In this document: in pieces, positions 540 through 63,388 of the stretch | Layout: each line of letters starts with the position of its first letter | How positions within the stretch are numbered: the stretch's first letter is position 1 | Source of the DNA: Bugula neritina | Taxonomy: Eukaryota; Animalia; Bryozoa | NCBI GenBank assembly: GCA_964035545.1 | Contig: OZ037770.1 | Coordinates: 11,490,463-11,554,462, forward strand | Direction of reading: 5' to 3' | DNA length: 64,000 nt | Notes under the pieces: model-generated | What the model saw: only the letters and a program-made list of their open reading frames with translations | What the model was told of the DNA's origin: nothing | The model's database searches: none | Made by a program: the position numbers and the translations under genes

Positions 540-3455
540 ATTCTAAACACGACATGGTTAATCTAGATGACTTAATCAAAGAGCTTATCAATATAGATGA
601 TCTTCTCACCACTGAAGACAAGATGTCTGCTTTCTTCAAACACCTTTCTAAAACTGTGTCAGACTTTGAGAATGAGACGGAGGAATTGCTGAATATTCTT
701 CATACACAGCGTGATGAACAGGTTCTGTGTTTATAGAAATACTTTGTGTTAGTCTGTAATCTACATTCTGTAGTCAGGTGTTAGTACAACATTGCAATAC
801 TAATACTTAAGAGTAACAGTTAGGTGACTAGCTACTATTCTGTTTTGACTTTAGAATTTAGAAATGTTAAGCAGAAGATATGTGCAGTTTTTTAACTCAG
901 TTTTGGAAAACTTTTTTCTAATAAGTTGTCAATATTCTACAATGTGATGATACAATGTATGATGTAGTTGACTGAAGTGAGACTAAAGTATGAGAAACTG
1001 GAGATGGAATTCTTAGCTAGTAGAAACAAGACTAAAGAGGAGCTGAACCGATACATGGAAAGAGAAGTTGAAACTGTTTTGTCTCAACTGAGTAACAGTA
1101 GAATGAAGATAGAAGCTCAACTTCGACAAAACCATCAGGTGAGCAGTGTTTATGAAATATATTTATAATAGGTCTTTAAAAATAACTAAGCTTATTATTG
1201 TCATTTATTTCTGTTTCAGATTTACTTCAATATTAAAAAAAAGTGAAAATAAAATAATTTACACAACTTATTGTTTTACATTTGCTGCAACTATCTTCAC
1301 ACCAGCCTTGATTATTCACTTCGTTTACAGCTGTAAAAATGTTAACAATCTGCAAGCTAAGACATCATATCTGTATAGCTATAACATCATATCCGTATAG
1401 TTATGGCATCATATCTGTATAGTTATGGCATTATATCTGTATAGTTATGATATCATAGCTGTATAGTTATGACATCATAGCTGTATAGTTATGACATCAT
1501 ATCTGTATAGTTATGACATCATAGCTGTATAGTTATGACATCATATCCGTATAGTTATGGCATCATATCTGTATAGTTATGGCATCATATCTGTATAGTT
1601 ATGATATCATAGCTGTATAGTTATGACATCATAGCTGTATAGTTATGACAGCATATCTGTATAGTTATGACATCATAGCTGTATAGTTATGACATCATAG
1701 CTGTATAGTTGTGACATCATAGCTGTATAGTCATGACATCATGATTATACAATTTTGTCAGCCCAAGTAAAGTTGTAGAGCTTAAGACTTGGCTTAAAGC
1801 AAGACTTGAATTTGTGAATGTCACAATTTCCACCTCTAAATTCCACATTACAACTACACTTTGAAATAAAATACAATGTATAGTTTATATTTGTATCTGT
1901 TAGTCGCCACATTTGTGTTCCGTGTGTACCATATGTATTATAATTGGTAATGTTGACATTTTTATGCATATCATTATGTAAACATCCACAGGGCTGACAA
2001 CTCTTATTAAATGAAGTTATCTCCACATATCCCTACATGCTGATGCTTAGTGCATACTATGCTATGCTTGTTTACTGTAGGTGGATCTGGTTGAAGGATT
2101 TGCAGAGATTAAAGAAAGAATACAGAGACTGATATCTGTTGAGATACCTAAACTAGAGCTGTGTGATGTCATGTCTCTAAAGGTCAAAGGTTAGCATACT
2201 ACGCTGGAGATTCTAGCACAGTATTATACTACTAATATTTTTAAAAGCTTCTAATAATCATGTATCTGCATTATATAATATAACTTTAACATTTGGCATC
2301 TTATCTGAATATTAACCCCATGTGTGTGAAACTACTGGTTTGAAAATTTGAGTTTCTGTTCAAATAGCCCTGTGTCTAGGTTTACTCAGAGTTTCTATTA
2401 ATATAATTTATACACATACTCACTTTTATATGACATACATATTATATATACATACTCACTTATATATAAGTATACACACATACACACACATTTACATGTA
2501 TATTGTAGAAGAGAAGAGAGACATAGAAGTAGACTTGGTTCCTGCAGCAGACATGATTATTAGTTTAGATCCTCCTGAATCTATCAAACTCTTACAGTCT
2601 GTTGATGTTTCTAGTTACTGTTATTCTGTCTGTAAATATGAGAGTAACACTTATGTAGGGCTGGATAGTGCAGGGATAGACAGAATAGATGAGAGTTTCA
2701 GTGTTTCCAAGTCTTTTATTTCTACTACTAACAATGTAACTGGAGTCACAGTACATAGGAAAAGGCTGTATTCTGTACAGGGTAATACAGTGTCTGTGTA
2801 TGATCTTACTGGGAAACAGGTGACCAGCTGGTCTCACCATGATAACTGTGGGTATATAAACAAACTTGTTATTGTTGATGATCAGGTTGTAGTTCCTGAT
2901 AGAGGCAGTAAAAGGCTTACAATCTACTCTCTTACTGGGAAAGTAATTAAACATGTCTCCTGCCCTCTACTCAGTAAGGATGCTGTAGCAATATGTGCAG
3001 CAGACAGACATTGTGTAGTAGTTTCTGATTATGGTTCCTCTCAAGTATTTAAAATAGACTTGACAACAGCGAAAGTCATCTGGACATGCAAGGATGTATC
3101 TCAACCACTAAGTGTGACCTGCTATAGAAGTAGATATATTCTTGTGACTAACTGCAGCAGTAAAACCACCATCTGGATACTGGGTGTGGAGACAGGTTAG
3201 TTTTACATTGGTTAGTTAACTACTGTTACTAATATAATAGTATTTCTCACAGTCTCACACTATAAAATATACTATGCTATGTACTAGTGATGACACACTA
3301 ATACATCATTTCCTGTTACAGGTACACAACTGTCCAAAGTGGACGATCCAACTGATAGAGCTAGGAGTAGTGTGTGTGATCTCCATGTGTATAAAGACAC
3401 TCTGATTGTACCTAGATACAGTGAGAAGAAAGTTCTGTTTTACCAGCTAAACTAA
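540..3455 (+). CDS. TRIM (RBCC + NHL-like propeller) copy C1, 5'-partial (exons 1-3 lie before the window)
   Basis: Exons 540-721, 968-1138, 2081-2189, 2509-3195, 3322-3455 with GT-AG boundaries and continuous frame ending ...KKVLFYQLN*. Near-identical to C5. Confidence 0.88.
1361..1743. repeat. 22-bp minisatellite (GACATCATAGCTGTATAGTTAT)n, about 17 units, intron 5 of C1
   Basis: Direct tandem repeats with period 22 and no unique spacers. Confidence 0.95.
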
Positions 3456-4623
3456 ACAGGTGTGTGACAGGATATTATTCCATCTTGTGGTACATTTATT
3501 ATATTGTTTATCACACTAGACTCTGTTTGAATACATTTGGTGCTCAACTCTGTGTTTTCTACTAATGTACATATTTGTGATGATATGTCTGAGATGTACA
3601 ACTTCTACATATAGACTGTGCCTGTTATTTCTAGATGATTCTCAAAGTTGACTCGGTAGAATGAGTTCTTCAACACGGAGCTATGATAGAGTGTGGGAAG
3701 CTGTATGACGTCCCAGTAACTAACTTATACACCTAAACCTAACTAATTTCAAGAAATAATTTATTATCACTTGTACCAAACAGCCTTTTCCACACAACCT
3801 GCAAGACTTCACGGTATTAACTGGCCTGTAACTTTATATATCTAACATGATTTGCATTGAATGGTCATGTAGAGATCAATGTGATCCTCATGGTAACTCT
3901 AAGTCTAAGTCTACATTTCCTACAGACTGAAATACTATTATATCACAATGTTTATTGTTTACTATCAAATACTAACCACTACTACTGCATTAATTTTGCT
4001 GTATACTTTATATGCTAGTTTCAATTCACTGTATTTGTATGTCAAGTTATTATTTTATATAATGTATTATATAACCTGTTTGATATTGTGTGATCATCTC
4101 ATCATTTGATTGGCTGTCATGGAATATAATATTCAAAGTGATTAATTATTCCAGTATATTCTATAAACAGTGAATAAATTAGAGTGACTATGGTTACTAA
4201 TGGCAACATATTTTACTATAAACACATCACCATTTCTCATTCCAGTAAAATAGTTTACAGCATTTCTACTCTGTGTAGAGTATAACATTAGCAATGTTGT
4301 AGTTACTTGTAGATGCAGAGTTGTAGATTCTCACTTGAGTTAGAACTTGAGTTATAAGAGAAGTTAGCTTACCTTGACATCTTGCTATCAGCAAATATAC
4401 CATGTAGACCACCTTTTATTCTTGTTCAGTAAAATGTTTATAATGTATAGAAAGAAAATTACTATTAAAATATTGGTACAGCATGTGGATTCTTGCTCAT
4501 GTTGGGTTATTGGACAAGCAAGGTACTTTTACTTCTTGCTATTGGAAAAATTGTCATAAATTGATCATTGCTTTAAAACAGGATGAGTTATGTAATACAC
4601 CACTTTTACACATTTTCAAGTTT

Positions 4624-6023: not shown

Positions 6024-9000
6024 ATGGCTGCAGCAGAAGAAGTTGAGTGTGGATTCTGTTTACTAAAAGAAGGTTTAGAGAATCCCAAGTGTCTACCATG
6101 TGGTCATGTACACTGTTTACTATGTCTTACTCGTAATGTTGATGTGAATGACATGATCAGGTGTCCCTGGTGTAGGTAAGTTAGTTTTGTATAGGCAAAG
6201 CTGAGACATATTGTTGGTAGAAAAATAGTGATTTACATCATGTGTTTAATCTTATACTGAATTTTTACATTACGTTGTATATATTTTTAATTACTACTGA
6301 ATAATTATGTGTCTTGTCACAGAGAAGTGTTTGATGTGAGAGTGGAGAGTCTTCCATCTGCTGATGTAGAGGACAACTCCGTATCATGTGACGTCTGCAC
6401 TAAAAAGGGACTGAACAAAGTACCAGCCATCATATACTGTACTGTGTGCCGTAAACTTTTCTGCAGAAAACATGATGAGGTGATACTTTCATTAAATACT
6501 TCTTCAGTTGATGTCCAACACTGCATACTCTAACTCAGCCTCTGATTACATGTTGTTGTACTTGAATGTTGATTTATAAGAAAGTACTGAGAGATCATGT
6601 TTCACTTTTATCTGTTTTATCTGCTCTCCTGCAAACTGCACATTTATTTTTAGACTTTGTGTTGGTGAGAATTTGTATGTTCCTATAAATATTTGTAAAT
6701 GTTTATAATATCATGTATTTGTAAGTTTCGTTTCTTTTCCACTATATGGATAGTGGAGTTATATTTCTCAGTAAATGTATATTCTGTTATATTCAGTTAC
6801 ATGATGAAATTGGAGATGACCACCAGAAGATGACCATCTCGGACTACAGAATACAAGCCAAGAGACTGGAGAAACGAGTTTGTCCCAAACACACAGCATA
6901 TCCCTACATACAAGGATGTAGAGTCTGTCTTCAGTTATTCTGTATGCAGTGCACATCTCAGACTAACTTTTGTGTTGGAGGTAAGAGGTTCTACTGAAAG
7001 CTATTTGCTAGACATTGGGAAATTTGATAAACTATATTACTATCTCAGTAACTCTTGTAATAAAGCTGCCTCCTCCAGGAATCAAACTTCAGTCCTCCAA
7101 CTAGCAATCTAACGTGCTACCCATTACACTATGATGGCTACTAGGGTATCACAACACTAGAAATCTGAAGCTAGTATAGAGAGATGGTTTACTTACTTTA
7201 CTTATAGTAGAATTTTCTACCTCGTTATTTATAAACTAGAGTTTCAGCAGTAGGCAAATCATTCTTAAATTCTAAAATGTAGTCGATTGAACATTTAAGA
7301 TAAAAATTAGAAATAATGAATGTAGGGCAATAGTAAGGCATTCATGATGATATATAATAATAATTATTTATGTAGCTATTATTATGTCTATTAGTATAGA
7401 TAGAAACTCCCCATTTTGTCAAGTCCGCACACTTAATGCAAAAGCTGTACAAATAGTGGTTATGAGTGCTGTATTCCGTCAAATCTGAGTGAATTTTTGT
7501 AAATTCAAATGTCACTCACTTATACAGCCTGTCTAAGCTTTGTCACGATTTTGCCACGGTGAAGTTTAGTTTTTATTTTCATTTTAGACTCACCACATCA
7601 CATGGTTAATCTAGATGACTTAATCAAAGAGGTTATCAATATAGATGATCTTCTCACCACTGAAGACAAGATGTCTGCTTTCTTCAAACACCTTTCTAAA
7701 ACTGTGTCAGACTTTGATAATGAGACGGAGGAATTGCTGAATATTCTTCATACACAGCGTGATGAACAGGTTGTGTGTTTATAGATAATACTTTCTGTTA
7801 CTCTGTAATCTACATTCTGTATTCAGGTGTTAGTAAAGCATTGTAATACTAATACTTAAGAGTAACAGTTAGGTGACTAGCTACTATTCTGCGTTTATTA
7901 AGACACTGTTTTGACTTTAGAATTTCGAAATGTTATGCGGAAGATATGTGCAGTTTTTTAACTCAATTTTGGAAAACTTTTTCTAATAAGTTGTCAATAT
8001 TCTACAATGTGCTGGTACAATGTATGATGTAGTTGACTGAAGTGAGACTAAAGTATGAGAAACTGGAGAAGGAATTCTTAGCTAGTAGAAAGAAGACTAA
8101 AGAGGAGCTGAACAGATACATGGAGAGAGAAGTTGAAACTGTTTTGTCTCAACTGAGTAACAGTAGAATGAAGATAGAAGCTCAGCTTAAACAAAACCAC
8201 CAGGTAAGCAGTGTTCACCAACTGTTTACTATATACGTTTAGATTATGTTTTTGTGAATCTTTAAGACTGCACCAGCATGCTGTACATACATGAAATGCG
8301 TTGAAAGTTAAAGGAAGTAATATAAGACTTATGTTGACCATCGCCATGCTCAATTACTTATATCCGTTTTAGCTTTATAGTTGTGTGCTTACAGACTTCG
8401 ATGTCCTCCAATATGGTAGTTAAAAGAATTGTTTTATAGTTGTATTGTTCTAAATTTGTAAAGTTCACAACTTTCACCAAAATCGATATATGTTACTAAG
8501 TAGTAGGTATACTAACTATAGTTTATCTAAATAGTTGATTTGGTGCAATATGCTTGTACCAGGCACACCAAGCTTTTTACCCATTTGTTACTTTATTGGA
8601 ACTGTCGCACAAAAGATTAGGAAGTTCTAACTAAAGAGACTGTTTTTTAGTCCCACTGGCCAATGCTATGGTTATGTATTGTAGGTGGATCTGGTTGAAG
8701 GATTTGCAGAGATTAAAGAGAGAATAGAGAGATTGATATCTGTTGAGATACCTAAACTAAAGCTGTGTGATGTCATGTCTCTAGAGGTCAAAGGTTAGTA
8801 TACTAAACTAGAACTGTGTGATATCATGTCTCTAAAGGTCAAAGGTTTGTATACTAAACTAGAGCTGTATGATATCATGTCTCTAAAGGTCAATGGTTAG
8901 TATACTAAACTAGAGCTGTATGATGTCATGTCTCTAAAGGTCAAAGGTTAGTATACTATACTAGAGCTGTGTGATATCATGTCTCTAAAGGTCAAAGGTT

Positions 9001-10310
9001 AGTATACTAAACTAGAGCTGTATGAAGTCATGTCTCTAAAGGTCAAAGGTTAGCATACTAGACTGTAGAATTCTTGTACTAGTGCACCTTTAATAAGATA
9101 TTTAAAATAATCATGTATCTGCATTGCAACTGATAAGTGCTCTTCATGTGTGTGCAACTACTGGTTAGAAAATTTGAATATCAGTTGAAATAGCCCTGTG
9201 TGTAGGAGTCAGAGTTTCTATTAATATAACTTATATACATACTCACTTTTATATGACATACATATTTTATATATATACTCACTTATATATTAGTATACAC
9301 ACATACACACATATTCACATGTATATTGTAGAAGAGAAGAGAGACATAGAAGTAGACTTGGTTCCTGCAGCAGACATGATTATTAGTTTAGATCAAGGAG
9401 TAACAATCCCTACTCTTCCTAAATCTCTCAAACTCTTGCAGTCTGTTGATGTTTCTGGTTACTGTTGGTCTGTCTGTAAATATGAGAGTAACACTTATGT
9501 GGGGCTGGGTAGTGGTGCAGGAATAGACAGAATAGATGAGAGTTTCAGTGTTTCCAAGTCTTTTATTTCTCTTACTAACTCTGTAGTTGGAGTCACAATA
9601 CATAAGGATAAGCTGTATGCTCTAGAGCTTATCGGCAGCACTAGTTGGGCAGTACATGTGTATGATCTTACTGGGAAACAGGTGACCAGCTGGTCTCATC
9701 ATGATAATTGTGGGTATGTAAACGAAATTGTTATTGTTGATGGCCAGTTTGTAGTTCCTGATAGAGGCAATAAAAGACTTACAATCTACCCTCTTACTGG
9801 GAAGGTAATTAAACATGTCTCCTGCTCTTTACTCAGTAACAATGCTGTAGCAATATGTGCAGCAGACAGACATTGTGTAGTAGTTTCTGACTATGGTTCC
9901 TCTCAAGTATTTAAATTAGACTTGACAACAGAGAAAGTCATCTGGACATGCAAGGATGTATCTCAACCACGTGGTGTGACCTGCTATAGAAGTAAATATA
10001 TTCTTGTGACTAACCGCAGCAGTAAAACCACCATCTGGATACGGAGACAGGTTAGTTTTACATTGGTTAGTTAACTACTGTTACCTAGATATTAGTATTT
10101 CTCACAGTCTCACACTATAAAATATACTATGCTAAGTACTAATGATGATACACTAATACATCATTTCCTGTTACAGGTACACAACTGTCCAAAGTAGAAG
10201 ATCCAACTGATAGAGCTATGAGTAATGTGTTAGATCTTCATGTGTTTAAAGACACTCTGATTGTCCCCAGACGTAAAGAGAAGAAAGTTCTGTTTTACCA
10301 GCTAAACTAA
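6024..10310 (+). pseudogene. TRIM copy C2; complete exon set but a 7-nt deletion at the end of exon 7 puts the last exon out of frame
   Basis: Exons 6024-6175 (C3HC4 RING CGFC..CGHVHCLLC..CPWC), 6323-6479 (B-box1), 6797-6980 (B-box2), 7588-7769, 8033-8203, 8685-8793, 9332-10050, 10177-10310. ATACGGAGACAG here versus ATACTGGATGTGGAGACAG in paralogs. Confidence 0.75.
8750..9058 (+). repeat. 51-bp tandem repeat of the exon-6 3' end plus splice donor (6 donors) in C2
   Basis: GT donors at 8794, 8845, 8896, 8947, 8998 and 9049. Confidence 0.92.
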
Positions 10311-11756: not shown

Positions 11757-14700
11757 TGTTATACAGTAATATTGTGGTGGTTCGTGGAACTACCAGCAGC
11801 ACAACGTGTAGGGTCGCGTGATTGACCCGGAACAATGTATTAGCCAATTAGCTAAGCTGTTTGATAAGTAATAGTAGCCGCTTCGCGCTACTAGCTCAGT
11901 TGAGGATAGTGCTGTAAATTAAATAGACGTGCGTATCATTACTGTTGTACATTGGATTTTATTATGTATTCGTGTATTAAATATAACAATATCTACTCGA
12001 CTTAGCTGGTGAAGTTTCTCTAGTATTAAATAGACTCTCTTGGTGGCACATCAACCCTAAATCTGAAAACTATAACAGTGGTGGCAGCGGTGGGATAGTG
12101 TATATCAAAGATGGAGACTGAAAATGCTAGAATGCAACCACCCCCCGTAGAAGGTGAGCGTAGAAATGCTGTTAATCCTGTGAATCGTGAAGGAGAAGAA
12201 GCTTATAGACATTACTTGAAAGCTCCCACCTTTACTGGGTCGGAAGATGTCGAACAATTTATACAAGAATTTAGAGAAGTAATGGAAGTTGCTCAATGGC
12301 CACATAGAGTGGCCCTTATCCAATTGCGGAGGGCGGTGACGGAGCAAGCCAAGCCGTACGGAGTGGGAACGGACGTAGACGGCATACTGGCTGCGCTGCG
12401 GGCCCGTTTTGGCACCTCCGTCATAGACGCTAGGACCAAGCTGGAGAGATTGTGCCGCACCCCGCGGACCTCGCTGCAAGAACATGCCGCGACGGTGAAG
12501 AAGCTGGCGCAGATTGCATATAGCGATCTGCCAGCACAACACCAAGAGCGTTACACCTATGACGCTTTTGTCCAGTCCCTAAACGACCTGGGCCTAGACC
12601 ATCACCTACGAGCTAAAGGGATAACCAGAATAGAGGATGCCCTGAAGGCTGGAGAAGCTTACCTGTTGGCTACCCAAATGCATCGACCACAAAGGAACCC
12701 CCCAGTAGTTGGAGTCAGCGCTGCCAGGGCTACGACAGGCTCCGAAGCCCTCCCGCTGGAAGCCGAAGTGGACCGCATGGTAGAGATGCTGGGACAATTG
12801 GTAACCATTCTGGCCGGTGCTGGCCCCGGTCAGGCCTTGCGGATGCCCCCAACATCTGTGGGGCAGGGCTGGAGTAGCGCTGATCAGGACCAGGGACAGA
12901 AAGGACGACCCCAATACCAGGGGGCGTTAAACTGTCACGGCCCGCGGACACACTCCCTCCCCGCGGGCCGCAACTAAAGGAGTATGGTGGAACGCGCCGT
13001 CGTCTGTCCGTACGGACACGGCGGAACATTCCACCCGAGTGGCAGGTACCACGCAGGACTAGTAGGCCCGCACAACGGCCCAGTACCTTCTCCCTGCCAC
13101 TCGCTAACCGGTTTCACCGGTTACCTCGGGAAGAGGAGCCCGCCACTGAAATGGAGCCAGAAGGCCCAGTGGAGAGGCCCAAACCCCGCCGGCACCAACC
13201 TCGCCGCCGGAAGCCCCGTAAACCACGGGTGAAACCCCCGCCGTCCTGTCAAACCAGGACAGCACATGCGGGGGGGGGTGAAAGTACAACCACATGGAGA
13301 GAGCTATTTCCTACCTGGAAAGGTGGCTGGCAATGCCGTCACTTTCCTGCTCGACTCCGGCTGTACTACCAACCTTCTCAGTCGTAGAGTCTTTGAGGCA
13401 CTGCCCCGCCGGGACAGGGATAGAGTACGACCGTATACTGGAGAACATGGCACCCTGGCAGACGGGTCATGTATCCCCTTTTATGGTATTATCGAGCTCC
13501 CTGGGCGTGTCCGAGATCAGGCTGTACAGGAGACCTTTATCATAGGTCAACTGGAAGAAGATGCTATCCTCGGAATGCCCTTCTTGAAGCAGCACCAGTG
13601 CCGAATAGATTTCAGTAAGTCGGTGGTGCTGATGGGCGGGCGAGAACTCGCCTGTGTGGATAAGTTTGGGCGTCCCCTGGTGGGCGGTGTTCAGGTAGTT
13701 CGGAACTGCACCGTACCCGGACGCTCCAGAGCTACTATCCACTGCCGAGTGAACAGCAACCGGATAGCCAGGCTCGGGGTCGTTGAAAGCGCGCACGAAA
13801 AGATCCAACTCGCCAGTAGTTTAAACCGACTAACTGAGCGAGGGGAGGTCTTAGTGCAGTGCGTCAACCCCTTTACCGAGCCCATTGAGCTCCCAGCTGG
13901 GTCAATGCTGGGCCGGTTCCATTCCGTCCAGGAAGAGGACGTGGGCCCGTCGCTGGGTGATGCGACAGAGGCACCCCCTCGACACCCTATTCAGGGACGA
14001 GGGGCAGTCCCAACACATCTCCGGGAGTTATACGAGACAGCCAGTAACGGCTGCGCGAGTAACAGAGAGCGCCAGGCTATGGCCAAGTTACTACGCGACT
14101 ACGGTGATGTGTTCAGCAGCGGAGAGCATGACGTGGGACTGACTGGAATTGTCAGACACGAAATACCGCTGACTGCAGGGACAGTCCCTGTCCGGCAGCC
14201 CACACGCAGGCTGGGGCCGGAGAAAGAGAAGGAGGTTAGCCGACAAGTACGGGATCTTCTGGACCGGGGACTGATAGAGCCCGCCCATAGTGCGTGGAGC
14301 TCGCCAGTCGTACTGGTCCGGAAGAAAGACGGCAGTTGGCGGTTCTGTGTGGACTACCGCAAACTCAATAGCGTAACCATACAGGACGCCTACCCTCTAC
14401 CTCGTATTGACGAGTCATTGGACGCCCTAGCCGGCAGCAAGTACTTCAGTACGTTAGACTTGCTAAGCGGCTATTGGCAGGTTCCTCTGAGTCCCGACGC
14501 CCAAGAGAAAGCGGCGTTTATCACACGGGACGGTTTGTGGAAGTGGAAGGTGCTGCCCTTCGGGTTAACCTCCGCCCCAGCCACCTTCCAGAGGCTGATG
14601 GAACAAGTCCTTAGCGGACTCCATTGGAAGACACTGCTGGTCTACCTCGATGATGTCATCGTAATCTCTCCAGACTTCGAGACACATGTCATTCGTCTGC

Positions 14701-15372
14701 AGGAGGTTTTCGAGAGACTCCGAGGTGCCGGTCTTAAGCTCAAACCTTCCAAGTGCGCTCTGTTGCAGCCGGAGGTCAAGTACCTGGGGCACGTTGTCGG
14801 TCGAAACGGCGTGGCAACGGATCCCGAAAAGGTACGGGCAGTAGAAGACTGGGTCACCCCCCAAGACTTGACCGGACTCCGGGCCTTCTTGGGGCTGGTA
14901 GGGTATTACAGGCAATACATACCAGACTTTGCGGGCATAGCCCAGCCGTTAAATCGGCTTACCGCAAAGGGAGTGACGTGGCAGTGGACTCCAGTCGAAC
15001 AAGAAGCGTTCGACTGCCTCAAGGGCTGCCTCCTAACGGCGCCCATCTTGGCCTACCCAGACCCCACTCTGGAGTACATCCTAGACACGGACGCCAGTGA
15101 CCAGAATGTTGGCGCTGTGCTGTCACAAGTGCAGGAAGGCCGAGAAGTAGTAGTAGCCTACTACAGCAAGTCTCTCTCTCCCGCTGAACGAAATTACTGC
15201 ACTACCCGCAAGGAGCTGCTGGCAGTAATCAAGTCAGTGAAGCACTTCAGACCATACCTATATGGCAGGAAGTTCCGGCTGCGTACGGATCATGCCTCGC
15301 TGATCTGGTTGTGCAGGAGAGCAGAGCCCTCTAGTCAGGTCGCCCGATGGCTCGAAATCCTAGCTGAATTCT
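11757..15372 (+). mobile_element. 3'-truncated Ty3/Gypsy LTR retrotransposon (5' LTR 11757-12077, tRNA-Leu PBS 12079-12096, gag, PR-RT-partial RNase H)
   Basis: TGTTATA...TATAACA termini, PBS TGGTGGCAGCGGTGGGAT, LLDSGC protease and YLDD RT motifs. Homology to the full-length element stops at RWLEILAEF; no integrase or 3' LTR. Confidence 0.92.
12111..12977 (+). CDS. gag: Gypsy Gag (288 aa), zinc knuckle degenerate
   Basis: PTFTGSEDVEQFIQEF capsid-like motif shared with Gag at 31620; directly follows the PBS. Confidence 0.85.
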   Translation: METENARMQPPPVEGERRNAVNPVNREGEEAYRHYLKAPTFTGSEDVEQFIQEFREVMEVAQWPHRVALIQLRRAVTEQAKPYGVGTDVDGILAALRARFGTSVIDARTKLERLCRTPRTSLQEHAATVKKLAQIAYSDLPAQHQERYTYDAFVQSLNDLGLDHHLRAKGITRIEDALKAGEAYLLATQMHRPQRNPPVVGVSAARATTGSEALPLEAEVDRMVEMLGQLVTILAGAGPGQALRMPPTSVGQGWSSADQDQGQKGRPQYQGALNCHGPRTHSLPAGRN

Positions 15373-15416
15373 TTACACTAAAAGCTTTGTTGCGTATTGT
15401 TTACAAGCACCGTTAA
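13266..15416 (+). CDS. pol: Gypsy Pol fragment (protease, RT, partial RNase H)
   Basis: FLLDSGC, WRFCVDYRKLN, PFGL, YLDD and DTDASD motifs. Frame broken upstream at the G9 run 13270-13278; the last ~14 codons are non-element sequence. Confidence 0.9.
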   Translation: MRGGVKVQPHGESYFLPGKVAGNAVTFLLDSGCTTNLLSRRVFEALPRRDRDRVRPYTGEHGTLADGSCIPFYGIIELPGRVRDQAVQETFIIGQLEEDAILGMPFLKQHQCRIDFSKSVVLMGGRELACVDKFGRPLVGGVQVVRNCTVPGRSRATIHCRVNSNRIARLGVVESAHEKIQLASSLNRLTERGEVLVQCVNPFTEPIELPAGSMLGRFHSVQEEDVGPSLGDATEAPPRHPIQGRGAVPTHLRELYETASNGCASNRERQAMAKLLRDYGDVFSSGEHDVGLTGIVRHEIPLTAGTVPVRQPTRRLGPEKEKEVSRQVRDLLDRGLIEPAHSAWSSPVVLVRKKDGSWRFCVDYRKLNSVTIQDAYPLPRIDESLDALAGSKYFSTLDLLSGYWQVPLSPDAQEKAAFITRDGLWKWKVLPFGLTSAPATFQRLMEQVLSGLHWKTLLVYLDDVIVISPDFETHVIRLQEVFERLRGAGLKLKPSKCALLQPEVKYLGHVVGRNGVATDPEKVRAVEDWVTPQDLTGLRAFLGLVGYYRQYIPDFAGIAQPLNRLTAKGVTWQWTPVEQEAFDCLKGCLLTAPILAYPDPTLEYILDTDASDQNVGAVLSQVQEGREVVVAYYSKSLSPAERNYCTTRKELLAVIKSVKHFRPYLYGRKFRLRTDHASLIWLCRRAEPSSQVARWLEILAEFFTLKALLRIVYKHR

Positions 15417-44952: not shown

Positions 44953-44978
44953 GGGGAATTCCCCCAGTCCAGGGTAAG
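44953..44978 (+). promoter_or_regulatory. NF-kB/Rel site GGGGAATTCCCC plus donor-like CAGG/GTAAG upstream of C6
   Basis: Perfect 12-bp kB palindrome at 44953-44964. Confidence 0.55.
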
Positions 44979-45194
44979 CGTTATTTTAATCCCGCATCTG
45001 CGCAGAAAGGTCTAACACTAACAGGAACTATAGGCTAAGTAGTTCCATAGGTCTTCCGTGACAAGGTAAAGTTTACCAACAGCAATAACTGCAAGTGTTA
45101 GCAAACTTGAAAGCGATGTTCATTGTTTTCAAATTTTAGTTTTAAAATCAACTTATTGTAGTTCTATTATCTCTAGTTTCGGATAGTTATACTG

Positions 45195-45320
45195 ATAGTG
45201 ACACTCATACTCATACTCATAGTCATACTGATACTCATACTTATACTGTTTCACACAGTCTCACTCACTTGGCTCATAGTGATAGTCAGTGACAGTCACA
45301 CTGACACTCACTTACAGTAC
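45195..45320. repeat. Degenerate (ACTCAT)n simple repeat; also near 27330-27420 and 60155-60310
   Basis: Hexamer runs in all three type-B spacers. Confidence 0.75.
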
Positions 45321-46208: not shown

Positions 46209-49200
46209 ATGGCTGCAGCAGAAGAAGTTGAGTGTGGATTCTGTTTACTAAAAGAAGGTTTAGAGAATCCCAAGTGTCTACCATGTGGTCATGTACACTG
46301 TTTACTATGTCTTACTCGTAATGTTGATGTGAATGACATGATCAGGTGTCCATGGTGTAGGTAAGTTAGTTTTGTATAGGCGGAGCTGAGACATATTGTT
46401 GGTAGAAAAATAGTGATTGACATCATGTGTTTTAGCTTATACTGAATTTTTACATTACGTTATATATATTTTTAATTACTACTGAATAATTATGTGTCTT
46501 GTCACAGGGAAGTGTTTGATGAGAGAGTGGAAAGTCTTCTATCTGCTGATGTAGAGGACAACTCCGTATCATGTGACGTCTGCACTAAAAAGGGACTGAA
46601 AAAAGTACCAGCCATCATATACTGTACTGTGTGCCGTAAACTCTTCTGCAGAAAACATGATGAGGTGATACTTTCATTAAATATCTCTTCAGTTGATGTT
46701 CAACACTGCATACTCTAACTCAGCCTCTGATTATATATTGTTATACTTAAATGTTGGTTTATAAGAAAGCACTGAGAGATCATGTTTCACTTTTATCTGT
46801 TTTATCTGCTTTCATGTAAACTATACATTTATTTTAAGACTTTGTGTTAGTGGGAACCTTTATGTTCCTATAAATATTTGTAAATTTTTATATCATGTAT
46901 TTGTAAGTTTCATTTCTAATCCACAATATGGATAGTTGAGTTATATTTCTCAGTAAAGATGTATTCTGTTATATTCAGTCACATGATGACACCAATGATG
47001 ACCACCAGAAGATAACCATCTCGGACTACAGAATACAAGCCAAGAGACTAGAGAAAAGAGTTTGTCCCAAACACACAGCATATCCCTACATACAAGGATG
47101 TAAAGTTTGTGTACAGCTGTTCTGTGCGCAATGCACATCTTGCACTAACTTTTGTGTTGGAGGTAAGAAAGTTCTGCTGAAAATTATTTACTAATTATTG
47201 ATAAATCTGATAGGTTGCATAACTACCTCAGTAACTCTTGTAAGATAGCTGCCCTCACCATGAATTGACCTGCAAACCTCTATCATGCAACTTCCACTAT
47301 ATGGGCTACTGGGTAATCACAGCACTACAAATTTGAAGCTAGCATAGATAAAGAGTTTATTTTGAGTAGAAACTCTGTTCAAAAGTATAGTCCATTATTC
47401 ATTGAGAAATTTTAAAATAGGCAAATAATTCTTAAAATATAAAAAATTAATTGAACGTTTAAAATTGAAAAAGAGGTCAGAAGTCAGTGAATTGAAGTGC
47501 CTCTCACTCGCACAGCGTGTCCAAAGTTTTATATTTTGTTTTTCAATGGCCACGCTGGAGTTTAGTTTTTCATTGTCATTTTAATTTTAGACTCACCCCA
47601 TCACATGGTTAATCTAGATGATTTAATCAAAGAGCTTATAAATATAGATGATCTTCTCACCACTGAAGACAAGATGTCTGCTTTCTTCAAACACCTTTCT
47701 AAAACTGTGTCAGACTTTGATAATGAGACGGAGGAATTGCTGAATATTCTTCATACACAGCGTGATGAACAGGTTCTGTGTTTATAGAAAATACTTTGTG
47801 TTGCTCTGTAATCTACATTCTGTAGTCAGGTGTTAGTAAAACATTGCAATACTAATACTTACGAGTAACAGCTAGGTGACTAGCTACTATGCTGTGTGAA
47901 TTAAATCACTGTATTTTGTTTAAAAAGTTGCAACTTTTGTAATCAATTCTGAAAAACTTTCTCGAATATGTTGTCCACTTTCTGCAATGTGCTGGTACAA
48001 TGTATGATGTAGTTGACTGAAGTGAGACTAAAGTATGAGAAACTGGAGAAGGAATTCTTAGCTAGTAGAAAGAAGACTAAAGAGGAACTGAACAGATACA
48101 TGGAGAGAGAAGTTGAAACTGTTTTGTCTCAACTGAGTAACAGTAGAATGAAGGTAGAAGCTCAACTTAGACAAAACCATCAGGTGAGCAGTGTTCACTA
48201 TATGTTAGCATAAGAAATTTAGGCTATGTCTTTTGTGTGAATCTTTAATAATGCACTAGCATGCTGTATAGGCATGAAATGCGTTGAAAATTAAAGGAAA
48301 TAATGTAAGACTCACGTTGACCATCTCCATGCCTAATTATTTATATTCGTTTTAGCTCTATAGTTGTGTGCTTACAAACTTCAATGTCTTCCAATATGGT
48401 GGGTAAAAGAATTGTTTTAAAGTTGTATTGTTCTAAATTTGTAAAATTCACAACTTTTACCAAAGTCTATATGTTCCTAAATAGTAGGTATACTAACTAT
48501 AGTTGATCTAAATAGTTGATTTGGTGCAATATGCTTGTACCAGGCACACCAAGCTTTTTACCCATTTGTTACTTTATTGGAACTGTCGCACAAAAGATTA
48601 GGAAGTTCTCACTAAAAAGACTATCCTTTTAGCCCCACTGACCAATGCTATGCTTGTTCACTGCAGGTGGATCTGGTTGAAGGATTTGCAGAGATTAAAG
48701 AGAGAATACAGAGACTGATATCTGTTGAGATACCTGAACTAGAGTTGTGTGATGTCATGTCTCTAAAGGTCAAAGGTTAGTATACTAAACTAGAGCTGTG
48801 TGATGTCATGTCTCTAAAGGTCAAAGGTTAGTATACTAAACTAGAGCTGTGTGATGTCATGTCTCTAAAGGTCAAAGGTTAGCAAACTAGACTGTAGAAT
48901 TCTTGTACTAGTGCACCTTTATTAAGATATTTGAAATAATCATGTATCTGCATTGCATCTGGTAAGTGCTTTTCATGTGTGTGCAACTACTGGTTAGAAA
49001 ATTTGAGTATCAGTTGAAATAGCCCTGTGTGTATAAGTCAGAGTTTCTATTAATAGAATTTATACACATACTCACTTTTATATGACATACATATTTTATA
49101 CATACTCACTTATATATAAGTATACACACATACACACATATTCACATGTATATTGTAGAAGAGAAGAGAGAAATAGAAATAGACTTGGTTCCTGCAGCAG

Positions 49201-50120
49201 ACATGATTATTAGTTTAGATCCTCCTAAATCTATCAAACTCTTACAGTCTGTTGATGTTTCTAGTTACTGTTATTCTGTCTGTAAATATGAGAGTAACAC
49301 TTATGTAGGGCTGAGTGGTGGAGGAATAGACAGAATAGATGAGAGTTTCAGTGTTTCCAAGTCTTTTATTTCTTTTACTAAGTGGGTAAATGGAGTCACA
49401 GTACATAGAAATAAGCTGTATGCTCTACATTGTATCAGCAGCAGTAATTGGGAGGTACATGTGTATGATCTTACTGGGAAACAGGTGACCAGCTGGTTTC
49501 ACCATGATAGTAATCGGTATGTAAACAAACTTGCTATTGTTGATGATCAGGTTGTAGTTCCTGATAGGCACAGTAAGAGGCTTACAATCTACTCTCTTAC
49601 TGGGGAGGTAATTAAACATGTCTCCTGCCCTCTACTCAGTAATAGTAATACAGCAATATGTGCAGCAGACAGACATTGTGTAGTAGTTTCTAACACTGGT
49701 TCCTCTCAAGTATTTAAATTAGACTTGACAACAGAGAAACTCATCTGGACATGCAAGGATGTATCTCAACCACAAGGTGTGACCTGCTATAGAAGTAAAT
49801 ATATTCTTGTGACTAACCGCAGCAGTAAAACCACCATCTGGATACTGGATGTGGAAACAGGTTAGTATTACATTAATTAGTTAACTACTGTGACCAATAT
49901 ATTAGTATTTCTCACAGTCTCACACTATAAAATATATTATGCTAAGCACTAGTGATGACACACTAATACATCATTTCCTGTTACAGGTACACTACTGTCC
50001 AAAGTAGAAGATCCAACTGGTAGAGCTGGGAGTAGTGTGTGTGATCTCCATGTGTATAAAGACACTCTGATTGTACCTCGATTCATGGAGAAGAAAGTTC
50101 TGTTTTACCAGTTGAACTAA
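46209..50120 (+). CDS. TRIM copy C6 (about 596 aa), intact
   Basis: Exons 46209-46360, 46508-46664, 46979-47162, 47591-47772, 48013-48183, 48667-48775, 49159-49860, 49987-50120; total 1791 nt, in frame. Confidence 0.9.
48735..48885 (+). repeat. 51-bp exon-6 donor repeat (3 donors) in C6
   Basis: Donors at 48776, 48827 and 48878. Confidence 0.9.
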
Positions 50121-51722
50121 ACAGGTATTTGACAGGATATTATTCCATCTTATGGTACATTTATTATATTGTTTATCACACTAGACTCTGTTTGAATACA
50201 TTTGGTGCTCAACTCTGTGTTTTCTACTAATGTACATATTTGTGATGATATGTCTGAGATGTACAACTTCTACATATACACTGTGCCTGTTATTTCTAGA
50301 CGATTCTCAGAGTTGACTCTGTAGAATGAGTTCTTCAACACGGAGCTATGATAGAGTGTGGGAAGCTGTATGACGTCCCAGTAACTCACTTATACACCTA
50401 AACATAACTAATTTCAAGTAATAATTTATTTTCACTTTATTTTTCACGTGTATCAATCCTATTCTATGCAGCCTGCGTAATTTCAGGGTATTAAGTAGAC
50501 TAACGTTTTATATCTTTAACCTGATTTGTATTAATAGTCATATAGAGATCAATGTGACCAATATGGTAGCGCTAAGTCTACATTTAATAAAAACTGAAAT
50601 ATTGTTATATCACATTGTTTACCACTTGCTATCAAATACTAACCACTACTGCTACATTCATTTTACTTTATAGTTTATATATGCTAGTTTTCATTCACTG
50701 TATTTTTATGGCAAGTTATTATTTTATATAATGTATTATATAACCTATTTGATATTGTGTGATCATCTCATCATTTGATTGGCTGTCATGGAATATAATA
50801 GTCAAAGTGATTAATTATTCCAGTATATTCTATAAACAGTGAATAAATTAAAGTGATTAGAGTTACTAATGGCAACATATTTTACTATCAACACATCAGC
50901 ATGTCTCATTCCAGTAAAATAGTTTACAGCATTTCTACTCTGTATAGAGTATAACATTAGCAATGCTGTAGTTACTTGTAGATGCAGAGTTGTAGATTCT
51001 TACTTGAGTTAGAACTTGGGTTATTAGAGAAGTTGGCCTACCTTGACATCTTGCTATCAGCAAATATACCATGTGGACCACCTTTTATTCTTGTTCAGTA
51101 AAATGTTTATAATGTATAGAAAGAAAATTACTATTAAAATATTGGTACAGCATGTAGGTTCTTGCTCATGTTGGGTTATTGGGTAAGCAAGGTACTTTTA
51201 CTTCTCGCTATTAAAAAACTTGTCATGAATTGATCATTGCTTTAAAATAGGATGGCTAAGAGTTATGTAATACACCACTTTTACACATGCCCAGCCAGTT
51301 TCAAGTTACCTGCATAAGTTACCTGTATAAGTTACCTTCATAAGTTACCTGTATAAGTTACTGGTATAAATTCTAACCATACTTACAGGTTTCTCCTGCA
51401 TCATGCTAGTGAATTTATATGTTTTACAACTGCATAAATGTTTTATATAAGCTTAGTGCAAAAGTGCTAAATAAATGAGCAATGGCTCTACATATAGTTA
51501 TTTTAGACTAGAAGATGATCACTATAATATTGAACTGAAAATTGAGTTTTGAGAACTTGTTTTGAGTTGTGGGCAAAGGCTGACTTCATAGCATAACATG
51601 TACGAAACTACTTCTATTTGTGACAGTTTGGTGCATAAAACGCAGCTGTTTATGCTTGTATTGTTGTAAGGGTTGATTTACATAACACAAATTATAGTTT
51701 TATTTGGAGCTTTTCGTCGCTT

Positions 51723-52729: not shown

Positions 52730-55700
52730 ATGGCTGCAGCAAAAGAAGTTGAGTGTGGATTCTGTTTACTAAAAGAAGGTTTAGAGAATCCCAAATGTCT
52801 ACCATGTGGTCATGTACACTGTTTACTGTGTCTTACTCGTAATGTTGATGTGAATGACATGATCAGGTGTCCCTGGTGTCGGTAAGTTAGTTTTATATAG
52901 GCAGAGCTGAGACATACTGTTGGTAAAGAGTTAATTATTTACATCAGCTGTTTTACCTTATACTAAACTAAACTTTTATATTTTTCTGTTATAATATAGT
53001 TTCAATAGTTATGTGTCTTGTCATAGAGAAGTGTTTGATGAGAGAGTGGAAAGTCTTCCATCCGCTGATGTAGCAGACAACTCCGTATCATGTGACGTCT
53101 GCACTAAAAAGGGACTGAAGAAAGTACCAGCAGTTATATACTGTACTGTGTGCCGTAAACTCTTCTGCAGAAAACATGATGAGGTGATACTTTCATTAAA
53201 TACTTCTTCAGTTGATGTTCAACACTGCATACTCTAACTCAGTCTCTGATTACATATTGTATACTTGAATGTTGATTTATAAGAAAGCACTGAGAGATCA
53301 TGTTTCACTTTTATCTGTTTTATCTGCTCTTATGTAAACTATACATTTATTTTTAGACTTTGTGTTAGTGGGAATTTTTATGTTCCTATAAATATTTGTA
53401 AATGTTTATAATATCATGTATTTGTAAGTTTCATTTCTAATCCACAATATGAATAGTTGAGTTATATTTCTCAGTAAATGCATATTCTGTTATATTTAGT
53501 CACATGATGAAACTGGAGATGACCACCAGAAGATGACCATATCTGACTACAGAATACAAGCCAAGAGACTGGAGAAAAGAATTTGTCCCAAACACACAGC
53601 ATATCCCTACATACAAGGATGTAGAGTCTGTGTTCAGTTATTCTGTATGCAGTGCACATCTCAGACTAACTTTTGTGTTGGAGGTAAAAGAATCTACTGA
53701 ATGTTATTTGCTAAACATTGGGAAATTTGACAAACTATATTACTATCTCAGTAACTCTTGTAATAAAGCTGCCTCCTCCAGGAACCAAACTTCAGTCCTC
53801 CAACTAGCAAGCTAACGCGCTACTCATTACACTATGAGGGCTACTAGGGTATCACAACACTAGAAATCTGAAGCTAGTATAGAGAGATGGTTTACTAACT
53901 TTACTTATAGTAGAATTTTCTTACCCAAGTCTACCTCGTTATTTATAATCTAGAGTTTCAGCAGTAGGCAAATCATTCTTAAATTTTAAAATGTAGTCGA
54001 TTGAACATTTAAGATAAAAATTAGAAATAATGAATGTAGGGCAATAGTAAGGCATTCATGATGATATATAATAATAATTATTTATGTAGCTATTATTATG
54101 TCTATTAGTATAGATAGAAATTTCCAATTTTGTCAAGTCTGCACAATTAATGCAAAAGTTGTACAAATAGTGGTTATGAGTGCTGTATTCCGTCAAATCT
54201 GAGTGAATTTTTGTAAATTCAAATGTCACTCACTTATACAGCCTGTCTAAGCTTTGTCACGATTTTGCCACGGTGAAGTTTAGTTTTTATTTTCATTTTA
54301 GACTCACCACACCACATGGTTAATCTAGATGACTTAATCAAAGAGCTTATCAATATAGATGATCTTCTCACCACTGAAGACAAGATGTCTGCTTTCTTCA
54401 AACACCTTTCTAAAACTGTGTCAGACTTTGATAATGAGACGGAGGAATTGCTGAATATTCTTCATACACAGCGTGATGAACAGGTTCTGTGTTTATAGAA
54501 AATACTTTGTGTTACTCTGTAATCTACATTCTGTATTCAGGTGTTAGTAAAGCATTGTAATACTAATATTTAAGAGTAACAGTTAGGTGACTAGCTACTA
54601 TTCTGAGTAAATTAAAACTCTATACTTGGTTAAAATATGTGATTTTTACAACTCAATTTTTTATGGAATGTTTTCTCTAATGTGTTGTTCATTTTTTACA
54701 ATGTGATGATACAATGTATGATGTAGTTGAGTGAAGTGAGACTAAAGTATGAGAAACTGGAGAAGGAATTCTTAGCTAGTAGAAAGAAGACTAAAGAGGA
54801 ACTGAACAGATACATGGAGAGAGAAGTTGAAACTGTTTTGTCTCAACTGAGTAACAATAGAATGAAGATAGAAGCTCAACTTAGACAAAACCATCCGGTT
54901 AGCAGTGTTCACCATCTGTTAATGAAATATGTATATAATCTTGTTTTCTTTCTCCCAATCTCTAATCATTTACTATCTTCACACCAGCCTTGATCATTTA
55001 TTTCTTTTACAGCGTCATGGTTTTGTGCAAAAGTGTAAACAATCTGCAAGCTATGACCTCATAGCTGTATAGTTATAACATCATGATTATACAATTTTGT
55101 CAGCCCAAGTAAAGTTGTAGAGCTTAAGACTTGGCTTAAAGCAAGATCTAAATTTGTGAATGTCACAATTTCCACCTCCAAATTTCACCTTACAACTACA
55201 CTTTAAAATAGAATATTATGCATAGTTTATATTAGTATCTGTTTGTTACCACATTTGTGTTCTGTGTGTACCATATGTATTGTAATTGCGTAACGTTATG
55301 TAAACATACACAGCGCTGAGGTCTCTAATTAAGTGAAGTTATCTCCACATAACTCTGTATGCTGTTTGTTATATACTGTAGGTGGATCTGGTTGAAGGAT
55401 TTGCAGAGATTAAAGAGAGAATACAAAGACTGATATCTGTTGAGATACCTAAACTAGAGCTGTGTGATGTCATGTCTCTAAAGGTCAAAGGTTAGTATAC
55501 TAAACTAGAGCTGTGTGATGTGATGTTTCTAGAGGTCAAAGGTTAGTATACTGAACTAGAGCTATGTGATGTCATGCCTCTGCAGGTCAAAGGTAAGTAT
55601 ACTCAACTAGAGCTGTGTGATGTCATGCCTCTAAAGATCAAAGTTTAATATACTAGACTGTAAAATTCTTGTACTAGTGCACTTTTGTTAAAATATTTAA

Positions 55701-56853
55701 AATAATCATGTATCTGCATCGAATCTGATAAGTGCTCTTCATGTGTGTGAAACTGCTGGTTAGAAAATTTGAATATCTGTTGAAATAGCCCTGTGTGTAG
55801 GTTTACTCAGAGTTTCTATTAATAGAATTTATTCACATACTTACTTTTATATGACATACATATTATATATACAGAATCACCTATATATAAGTATACACAC
55901 ACACACATATTCACATGTATATTGTAGAAGAGAAGAGAGACATGGAAGTAGACTTGCTTCCTGCAGCAGACATGATTACTAGTTTAGATCTTCCTAAATC
56001 TCTCAAACTCTTACAGTCTGTTGATGTTTCTAGTTACTGTAGTTCTGTCTGTAAATATGAGGGCAACACTTATGAGAGTTTCAGTGTTTTCAAGTCTTTT
56101 ATTTCTCTTACCAACTCTGTAGCTGGAGTCACAGTACATAGGAACAAGATGTATGCTCTACAGTATATCAGCAGCACTAATTGGGAGGTACATGTGTATG
56201 ATCTTACTGGGAAACAGGTGACCAGGTGGTCTCACCATGATAGTAGTTACGGTGTAAACAAACTTGTTATTGTTAATGATCAGGTTGTAGTTCCTGATAG
56301 ACACAGTAAAAGACTTACAATCTACTCTCTTACTGGGGAGGTAATTAAACATGTCTCTTGCCCTCTACTCAGTAATAGTAATACAGCAATATGTGCAGCA
56401 GACAGACATTGTGTAGTAGTTTCTGACTGGGATTCCTCTCAAGTATTTAAATTAGACTTGACAACAGGGAAAGTCATCTGGACATACAAGGATGTATCTG
56501 AACCACATGGTGTGACCTGCTATAGAAGTAAATATATTCTTGTGACTAACTGCAGCAGTAAAACAACCATCTGGATACTAGATGTGGAGACAGGTTAGTT
56601 TTACATTGGTTAGTTAACTACTGTTACCTAGATATTAGTATTTCTCACAGTCTCACACTATAAAATATACTATGCTAAGTACTAATGATGATACACTAAT
56701 ACATCATTTCCTGTTACAGGTACACAACTGTCCAAAGTAGAAGATCCAACTGATAGAGCTTGGAGTAGTGTGGATGATCTTCATGTGTATAAAGACACTC
56801 TGATTGTCCCCAGACGTAAAGAGAAGAAAGTTCTGTTTTACCAGCTAAACTAA
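52730..56853 (+). CDS. TRIM copy C7 (about 584 aa), in-frame deletion in the first propeller blade
   Basis: Exons 52730-52881, 53027-53183, 53500-53683, 54302-54483, 54727-54897, 55382-55490, 55928-56593, 56720-56853; total 1755 nt, in frame. Confidence 0.85.
55449..55650 (+). repeat. 51-bp exon-6 donor repeat (3 donors plus 1 decayed) in C7
   Basis: Donors at 55491, 55542 and 55593 (GTAAGT); decayed unit near 55644. Confidence 0.88.
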
Positions 56854-61208: not shown

Positions 61209-63388
61209 ATGGCTGCAGCAGAAGAAGTTGAGTGTGGATTCTGTTTACTAAAAGAAGGTTTAGAGAATCCCAAGTGTCTACCATGTGGTCATGTACACTG
61301 TTTACTATGTCTTACTCGTAATGTTGATGTGAATGACATGATCAGGTGTCCCTGGTGTAGGTAAGTTAGTTTTGTATAGACAGAGGTGAGATATATTGTT
61401 GGTAAAGAGTTCATGATTTACATCATATGTTTTACCTTATACCGAATTTTTGCATTCCGTTATATATAGTTTCAATTATTACTAGATAATTATGTGTCTT
61501 GTCATAGGGAAGTGTTTGATGAGAGAGTGGAAAGTCTTCCATCTGCTGATGTAGCAGACAACTCCGTATCATGTGACGTGTGCACTAAAAAGGGGCTGAA
61601 GAAAGTACCAGCAGTCATATACTGTATTGTGTGCCGTAAACTCTTCTGCAGAAAACATAATGAGGTGATACTTTCATTAAATACTTCTTCAGTTGATGTT
61701 CAACACTGCATACTCTAACTCAGCCTCTGATTACATATTGTATACTTGAATGTTGATTTATAAGAAAGCACTGAGTGATCATGTTTCACTTTTATCTGTT
61801 TTATCTGCTCTCATGTAAACTATACATTTATTTTTAGACTTTGTGTTAGTGGGAATTTTTATGTTCCTATAAATATTTGTAAATGTTTATATCATGTATT
61901 TGTAAGTTCCGTTTCTTTTCCACAATATGGATAGTTGAGTTATATTTCTCAGTAAATATATATTCTGTTATATTCAGTCACATGATGACACGAGTGATGA
62001 CCACCAGAAGATGACCATCTCGGACTACAGAATACAAGCCAAGAGACTGGAGAAAAGAATTTGTCCCAAACACACAGCATATCCCTACATACAAGGATGT
62101 AGAGTCTGTGCTCAGCTGTTCTGTGTGCAGTGTGTATCTCGGACTAACTTTTGTGTTGGAGGTAAAAGAATCTACTGAAAGTTATTTGCTAAACGTTGGG
62201 AAATTTGACAAACTATATTACTTATCTCAGTAACTCTTGTAATAAAGCTGTCTCCTCCAGCAATCAAACTTCAGTCCTCCAACTAGCAAGCTAACGCGCT
62301 ACCCATTACACTATGAGGGCTACTAGGGTGTCACAACACTAAAAATCTGAAGCTAGTATAGAGAAATGGTTTGCTAACTTTACTTATGGTAGAATTATCT
62401 AACTCGTTATTTTTAAACTAGAGATTCAGCAGTAGGTAAATAATTTTTGAATTATAAAATGTAGTCAATTGAACATTTAAAATAAAAATTAGAGATAATG
62501 AATGTAGGACAATAGTAAGACATTTATGATGATATATATTAATAATTATTTTATGTAGCTAGTATTATGTCTATTAGTATAGATAAAAACCCCTCATTTC
62601 GTCAAGTCCGCACATTTAATGCAAAAGCTGTACAAGTAGTGGTTATGAGTGCTGTATTCCGTCAAATCTGAGTGAATTTTTGTAAATTCAAATGTCACTC
62701 ACTTATACAGCCTGTCTAAGCTTTGTCACGATTTTGCCACGGTGAAGTTTAGTTTTTATTTTCATTTTAGACTCACCACACCACATGGTTAATCTAGATG
62801 ATTTAATCAAAGAGCTTATCAAAATAGATGATCTTCTCACCACTGAAGACAAGATGTCTGCTTTCTTCAAACACCTTTCTAAAACTGTGTCAGACTTTGA
62901 TAATGAGACGGAGGAATTGCTGAATATTCTTCATACACAGCGTGATGAACAGGTTGTGTGTTTATAGAAAATACTTTCTGTTACTCTGTAATCTACATTC
63001 TGTAGTCAGGTGTTAGTAAAGCATTGTAATACTAATACTTAGGAGTAAAATTTAGGTAATTAGCTACTATTCTATGTGAATTATACCACTATTTTTTGTT
63101 TAAGGATTTAGGAATGTTATGCGAAATTATCTATGCTGTTTTTTGACATAATTCTGAAACACTTTCTCTAATTTGTTGTCCACTTTCTACAATGTGCTGA
63201 TACAATGTATGATGTAGTTGACTGAAATGAGACTAAAGTATGAGAAACTGGAGAAGGAATTCTTAGCTAGTAGAAAGAAGACTAAAGAGGAACTGAACAG
63301 ATACATGGAGAGAGAAGTTGGAACTGTTTTGTCTCAACTGAGTAACAGTAGAATGAAGATAGACGCTCAACTTAGACAAAACCATCAG
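61209..63388 (+). CDS. TRIM copy C8, 3'-partial (exons 1-5 in window)
   Basis: Exons 61209-61360, 61508-61664, 61978-62161, 62771-62952, 63218-63388. Confidence 0.88.

Follow-up and report, generated by a model that had tools for sequence, protein, structure and literature searches.

Among described systems, clustered TRIM (tripartite motif) genes of vertebrates and the TRIM-NHL proteins come closest to the locus reported here. In finTRIMs, which are induced by virus, the RING and B-box are constant and selection falls on the C-terminal domain (PMC2657112). TRIM-NHL proteins (Brat, Mei-P26, Thin/Abba, TRIM2, TRIM3, TRIM32 and TRIM71; subfamily C, PMC3503706) join an RBCC part (RING, B-box and coiled coil) to a six-bladed propeller; their genes are few and conserved, as is the electropositive face with which they bind RNA. 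TRIM56 has the architecture that we find here and restricts viruses through its NHL-like domain (PMC13236048), and the purple sea urchin has approximately 140 TRIM-annotated genes, many of them induced in coelomocytes (PMC13043383). We analysed a 64,000-nt stretch (the window) of the bryozoan Bugula neritina (GCA_964035545.1, contig OZ037770.1, 11,490,463–11,554,462, forward strand), where an initial annotation had proposed a tandem array of TRIM ligase genes with hypervariable patches, likened to complementarity-determining regions (CDRs), on a C-terminal beta-propeller. Like finTRIM and primate TRIM5, the array is a clustered multigene family with near-identical RING/B-box, selected C-terminal loops and lineage-specific expansion. 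Unlike them, it has a predicted six-bladed NHL-type propeller in place of B30.2/PRY-SPRY, and its host is a lophotrochozoan; virus induction is a finTRIM feature. The selection falls on one face of the propeller.

Exon mapping placed eight copies (A–H) of one eight-exon gene on the plus strand of the window (Table 1), and self-comparison of the window gave a plus-strand repeat with a period of 6–9 kb. Exon lengths are constant across copies (152, 157, 184, 182, 171, 109, 666–762 and 134 nt) and the introns are GT-AG. The C3HC4 RING is encoded in exon 1 and a B-box in each of exons 2 and 3; the probable coiled coil follows in exons 4–6, and a linker and the beta-propeller in exons 7–8. Beyond the window, sequence was read in the 11.43–11.61 Mb cluster and part of a 9.1 Mb cluster on the same contig; copies A and H were completed from this flanking DNA, and the breaks in B and D were aligned as N or X. 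The local cluster (11.43–11.60 Mb) holds 18 copies, 12 with an open frame and canonical splice sites and six broken or partial; the open frames in the window set are A, E, F and H. At least 150 matches to exon 7 were found across the 216-Mb genome, RING exons sit at places matching these loci, and approximately 40 of the matches (at least 73% identity) are grouped in three clusters on the contig of the window. Assembly artefact was rejected as the source of this diversity, since copies differ in introns, flanks and in-frame indels, and so was somatic rearrangement, since every copy is a complete gene.

The translated exons and a homologue model agree with the RBCC-propeller architecture and NHL-type fold first proposed. 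Exon 1 shows the full C3HC4 pattern (Pfam zf-C3HC4_2, E 2e-4), exon 2 an ANCHR-like B-box (E 4e-4) and exon 3 a zf-B_box (E 3e-4), all three below the curated cut-off, and the B-box Cys/His columns are nearly invariant across copies. The coiled-coil region, assigned by composition and position only, comprises about 150 E/K/L/R-rich residues at the expected place. By analogy with such proteins, the gene products would be E3 ubiquitin ligases. In the gene models, Pfam found no B30.2/PRY-SPRY match and no signal peptide or membrane segment was apparent. The Pfam NHL repeat stayed under its cut-off in the array (best 12.2 bits against 20), and the array is not among the genome's PF01436 matches; a family profile matched Brat, TRIM3 and Thin at E 2e-5 to 5e-5. 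As a stand-in for the array propeller, we folded residues 352–626 of P0073, a homologue from the bryozoan Watersipora subatra (AlphaFold, 116-row alignment); a single-sequence fold of exon 7 had a predicted local distance difference test score (pLDDT) of 54 and was left unused. The P0073 model (pLDDT 95) has 24 strands in six blades, and its best structural matches are Brat (Z 27.7), Thin (27.2), TRIM2 (27.1), Mei-P26 (27.0) and TRIM3 (26.8), with root-mean-square deviations of 2.2–2.8 Å. WD40 and PQQ propellers were rejected, having weak Pfam matches and structural scores under those of NHL. Strands assigned in copy F from its repeat pattern agree with the model, in which strand a begins about two residues earlier, so a few 'loop' sites lie at the top rim of strand a. 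The top face was assigned from topology rather than coordinates; by definition it is formed by the b-c and d-a loops, which bind RNA in Brat (PMC4015489). On this modelling, the C-terminal domain is a six-bladed NHL-type propeller, NHL-like in the sense that TRIM56 is.

Variation among the copies is concentrated on that face. Mean pairwise amino-acid identity in the window copies is 96.8% for the RING, 94.5% for the coiled coil and 88.7% for the B-boxes, and within the propeller it is 91.8% for strands, 87.7% for bottom-face loops and 68.3% for top-face loops. All loop motif series listed in the initial annotation were found in translated exons 7–8 of copies A–G and, as it had claimed, the patches return with every blade, at the d-a and b-c loops, with 5–16 amino-acid alleles per loop among 18 copies. 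Its statement that the copies are near-identical elsewhere held for the RING and coiled coil and failed for the introns, which are 5–18% divergent (pairwise distance 0.05 for intron 7 and 0.11–0.18 for introns 1, 2 and 4); variable columns are more frequent in introns than at RBCC codon positions 1–2. Many changes are indeed multi-nucleotide: 40% of differing codons in top loops, compared with 26% in bottom loops and 15% in the RBCC part. A short stretch where B-box 2 ends, in exon 3 (e.g. 47120–47162), is variable too, with at most four residues per column and weak signs of selection.

The ratio of nonsynonymous to synonymous differences (pN/pS), computed on 19 copies, was 0.13 for the RING, 0.28 for the B-boxes, 0.31 for the coiled coil, 0.50 for strands and 0.61 for bottom loops. 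Compared with bottom loops, top loops had higher pN (P = 1e-4) and no significant difference in synonymous distance (0.16 vs 0.11; P = 0.11). Site models of the propeller were run on an IQ-TREE codon tree with fixed relative branch lengths, F3x4 frequencies and a uniform synonymous rate (M0 likelihood -4447.87, compared with -4447.94 in IQ-TREE). They gave twice the log-likelihood difference (2dL) of 240 for M8 vs M8a and 242 for M2a vs M1a, with omega 5.7 on 15% of codons, bearing out the expectation that dN/dS exceeds 1 at variable sites. Posteriors above 0.95 were reached by 25 sites, 15 in d-a loops, eight in b-c loops and two in strands, with none among 37 bottom-loop codons (Fisher P = 1e-4); the selected sites are thus neither scattered nor in bottom loops, as had been predicted for a single binding face. 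In the RBCC part, site models gave omega 0.33 and 2dL 5.7, and positive selection there (omega 1.7) was rejected as weak.

The propeller signal was re-examined under several models. It was 2dL 161 under a multi-hit model, 141 with six per-blade trees (111 with multi-hit), 82 for window copies A–G alone (30 with multi-hit) and 118 for intact copies alone (84 with multi-hit); of 16 neutral simulations, 12 used mosaic trees, and none went above 38. In a tree-free count, at least three nucleotide states were present at 24% of top-loop second positions, compared with 10.6% of intron columns (P = 0.0015) and 2.3% of fourfold sites (P = 1e-6). Exchange among array copies cannot inflate this count. 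Judged by these tests, diversifying selection is strong and confined to the top face, and the scaffold is under purifying selection.

The copies also appear to exchange sequence. RBCC and propeller trees differ, site incompatibility in the propeller climbs to a plateau within 16–60 nt, 44–53% of synonymous site pairs more than five codons apart are incompatible, and a test resembling the pairwise homoplasy index (PHI) gave P = 0.01 and 0.0005. Nucleotide-identical loop alleles are common to different sets of copies at each loop: copy C shares its blade-3 d-a loop with copy g14 and its blade-5 d-a loop with copy g18. These patterns support the view that the copies are mosaics, made by unequal crossing-over or gene conversion; at short loops, part of the allele sharing can be put down to recurrent mutation.

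The chemistry of the variable face bears on its ligands. Ser (16%), Tyr (15%), Asn, Thr, Gln and Trp are frequent at the selected sites, which compared with other loop positions are enriched in Tyr (14.7% vs 0.3%), Trp (4.5% vs 0.8%) and Gln. The emphasis of the initial annotation on Trp, Tyr and Arg at variable sites was therefore right for the first two; Arg is not enriched (5.1% vs 6.6%). A face rich in Tyr, Ser, Trp and Asn recalls antibody paratopes. The propeller is slightly basic in most copies, and top-loop net charge, counted from sequence rather than from an electrostatic map, is -1 to +6. The composition appears closer to paratopes than to the conserved basic RNA-binding NHL face, which favours protein or glycan ligands, with RNA a possible one.

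In its RBCC part, six-bladed propeller and best structural and profile matches, the array resembles TRIM-NHL proteins, but it has at least 100 copies and a hypervariable face, lacks the filamin domain between coiled coil and propeller (a linker of about 25–45 residues stands there) and is only 14–18% identical to them. TRIM56 likewise has a RING, two B-boxes, a coiled coil, a linker and a divergent NHL-like six-bladed propeller that its antiviral role needs; unlike the array, it is a single-copy vertebrate gene with a long disordered linker. We class the array as a TRIM-NHL-like family that is divergent, has no filamin domain and shares the architecture of TRIM56. It equals the expanded 'TRIM2/45/56-like' genes of echinoderms, molluscs and W. 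subatra in length and architecture, and look-alike clusters occur in molluscs and echinoderms (atlas similarity 0.96–0.97). The nearest database relatives (up to 85% identity) come from JGI (Joint Genome Institute) assemblies, the two traced of them Bugula-labelled. In a Bugula-labelled sample the introns are only 74–77% identical to the array, so this sample may be another species, and two of its propellers have no counterpart above 83–88% identity in the present genome. The selected columns vary also in 20 homologues from JGI samples (entropy 2.08 vs 0.41 bits). Full-length but more distant relatives occur in W. subatra, as RefSeq proteins from several contigs; the joined model of copy F is 35% identical to P0073 end to end (local blastp). 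Finally, a 1525-nt contig from a public run carries, in a single frame, coiled-coil and propeller sequence belonging to a distant relative; some relative is therefore transcribed and spliced, which has no bearing on the array copies.

We favour, with moderate confidence, the reading that the copies form a germline repertoire of receptors for non-self inside the cell, coupled to a RING ligase. The step from a diversifying binding face to immune recognition via ubiquitination is taken by analogy with finTRIM, TRIM5 and TRIM56; the array would work like finTRIM and TRIM5 without membership of either, as it has no B30.2. Its targets would be fast-changing non-self, viral or other intracellular microbial components. 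Following TRIM biochemistry, the coiled coil would dimerise so that two propellers bind with avidity, the B-boxes would promote higher-order assembly on a repetitive target, and clustering would activate the RING, leading to target ubiquitination or signalling chains. Every copy would offer a different Tyr/Ser/Trp/Asn-rich surface, and near-identical coiled coils might permit heterodimers. Several points weigh against this reading. The selection signal speaks for an arms race rather than for any particular opponent. Pooled top-loop pN/pS is only 1.15 (95% interval 0.78–1.71), and the signal therefore rests on a subset of sites; the site models are our own implementation, with naive empirical Bayes posteriors, and at least three to four of the eight window copies are broken.

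Unlikely, though the best placed of the alternatives, is a face that diversifies to escape or decoy pathogen antagonists, or for sequence-specific RNA binding as in Brat and LIN-41, making the proteins regulators or decoys and not receptors of foreign ligands. In TRIM-NHL proteins the face that varies here binds RNA (PMC4015489), the propeller is slightly basic in most copies, and TRIM56 is reported to be targeted by a Salmonella effector (PMC5241803); however, top-loop charge is small, no basic residue is enriched at selected sites, and a regulator of host RNA would be expected to conserve its face. We give slightly less weight to an endogenous opponent, i.e. germ-line recognition of the Gag/capsid or RNA of retrotransposons, or of other selfish elements, as TRIM5 recognises retroviral capsids. 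Young Ty3/gypsy elements lie in and between the genes, more copies are present in the 9.1 Mb cluster, and TRIM-NHL proteins are often active in germ line and stem cells; a repeat-rich cluster would nevertheless be expected to collect insertions even with no functional connection.

Colonial animals have polymorphic recognition loci, and the two propellers of the Bugula-labelled sample that lack close counterparts here are compatible with strong differences between individuals. Colony self/non-self discrimination, gamete recognition or control of bacterial symbionts, instead of pathogen defence, is nonetheless improbable: known allorecognition molecules are surface proteins whereas our models lack apparent signal peptides or membrane segments, the sample may be another species, and similar families occur in solitary molluscs and echinoderms. 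The explanation without selection, in which a tandem array decays and its loops, under relaxed constraint, change by multi-nucleotide mutation and gene conversion, fits the pervasive recombination, the broken copies and the somewhat higher synonymous distance in top loops, but is largely refuted and very improbable, given equally exposed bottom loops with zero selected sites, a signal that persists in intact copies, simulations, per-blade trees, multi-hit models and the tree-free state count, and the low RING pN/pS.

Table 1. Coordinates of array copies, selected codons and retroelements, numbered from the first letter of the window.
Feature	Position	Strand	Remarks
Copy A, exons 4–8	540..3455: 540-721, 968-1138, 2081-2189, 2509-3195, 3322-3455	+	open frame; exons 1–3 just upstream of window
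Copy B, exons 1–8	6024..10310	+	7-nt deletion at ~10040 near exon 7 end; frameshift, blade 6 gone
Copy C	15630..16921	+	end of exon 6, exon 7 (15936-16661) and exon 8 (16788-16921) only; 5′ half gone
Copy D, exons 1–8	19528..24104	+	stop at codon 22 (RING exon); 19-codon duplication in linker before propeller
Copy E, exons 1–8	28309..41257	+	open frame; 8-kb retroelement inside intron 5
Copy F, intact, 596 aa	46209..50120	+	RING 46209-46360; B-box 1 46508-46664; B-box 2 46979-47162
Copy F, rest	47591-47772, 48013-48183, 48667-48775; 49159-49860, 49987-50120	+	coiled coil (first three); propeller (last two)
Copy G, exons 1–8	52730..56853	+	open frame; 13-codon deletion takes b-c hairpin tip and strand c of blade 1
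Copy H, exons 1–5	61209..63388	+	open frame; exons 6–8 just downstream of window
25 selected codons, copy F (first base)	49242, 49266, 49272, 49314, 49380, 49383, 49389, 49428, 49431, 49437, 49452, 49515, 49518, 49644, 49647, 49650, 49695, 49767, 49773, 49818, 50028, 50034, 50040, 50082, 50085	+	site models
Truncated Ty3/gypsy element	11765..15416	+	gag-like ORF (open reading frame) 12111-12977; protease-reverse transcriptase-RNase H ORF 13266-15416; without integrase
Ty3/gypsy LTR (long terminal repeat) element, copy E intron 5	31177..39167	+	LTRs 31177-31568, 38776-39167; gag ORF 31620-32519; pol ORF 32516-38470
Duplicated block, 25.2 kb (copies E and F, gypsy)	25510..50682	+	second copy 56 kb upstream, outside window, 99.66% identity

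The family shows birth-and-death turnover; from the lesions in Table 1, copy B is a probable pseudogene and copy G probably damaged. The initial annotation had noted neither the broken copies nor the two retroelements and the 25-kb duplication. The truncated Ty3/gypsy element has a counterpart of 97.7% identity in the 9.15 Mb cluster and occupies the expected place of copy C exons 1–6; a 260-bp repeat that follows it (15371–15630) recurs at two more cluster sites with 99.6% identity. The element in intron 5 of copy E has LTRs that are 99.5% identical and a 4-bp target-site duplication (ATAG), and by these signs is full-length and young; its pol ORF continues about 600 residues past the integrase and, close to its end, weakly matches a C2H2 zinc finger. 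The 25-kb block may be a recent duplication or an unmerged haplotype, and is the only part of the array that could be a false duplication. Copy F and its upstream twin have identical propellers, and the twin was excluded from analysis; the twin of E lacks 15 nt of blade 1, with the frame kept.

Other length variation was observed within the genes. The linker at the start of exon 7 (e.g. 23083–23200) varies in length among copies, in steps of 7 to 19 codons that keep the frame. A 51-bp tandem repeat of three to six copies is made up of the exon 6 end and its splice donor (8752–9064, 22616–22771, 48737–48893 and 55449–55659), and a later donor, if used, would read into a stop. Intron 5 contains a 22-bp minisatellite of 8–17 units, depending on the copy (1361–1742, 21928–22226, 39361–39544 and 63677–64000). 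Elsewhere, contig C8 (4.2–9.4 Mb) carries dozens of clustered, more distant RING exons (36–49% identity) with few or no exon-7 matches, possibly a second large TRIM-like family.

A literature search, with most subscription journals outside its scope, returned no paper mapping positive selection onto a propeller face or describing such genes in bryozoans, a phylum without a described family of this kind in the literature searched. On the favoured reading, the design of TRIM5 and finTRIM (a constant ligase, a selected binding face and gene clusters) would have arisen again on a different binding fold. A wider proposal is tentative and on balance doubtful: in marine invertebrates, TRIM-NHL-like ligases may be a general intracellular receptor system in which twelve CDR-like loops are reshuffled among at least 100 copies by short-tract gene conversion, giving individual combinatorial repertoires tied directly to ubiquitination. 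The 25 defined residues are now available as test targets, and a propeller scaffold tolerant of variation in twelve loops is an interesting natural binder library. Together, these results suggest that many 'TRIM2/45/56-like' genes of molluscs and echinoderms merit equal analysis.

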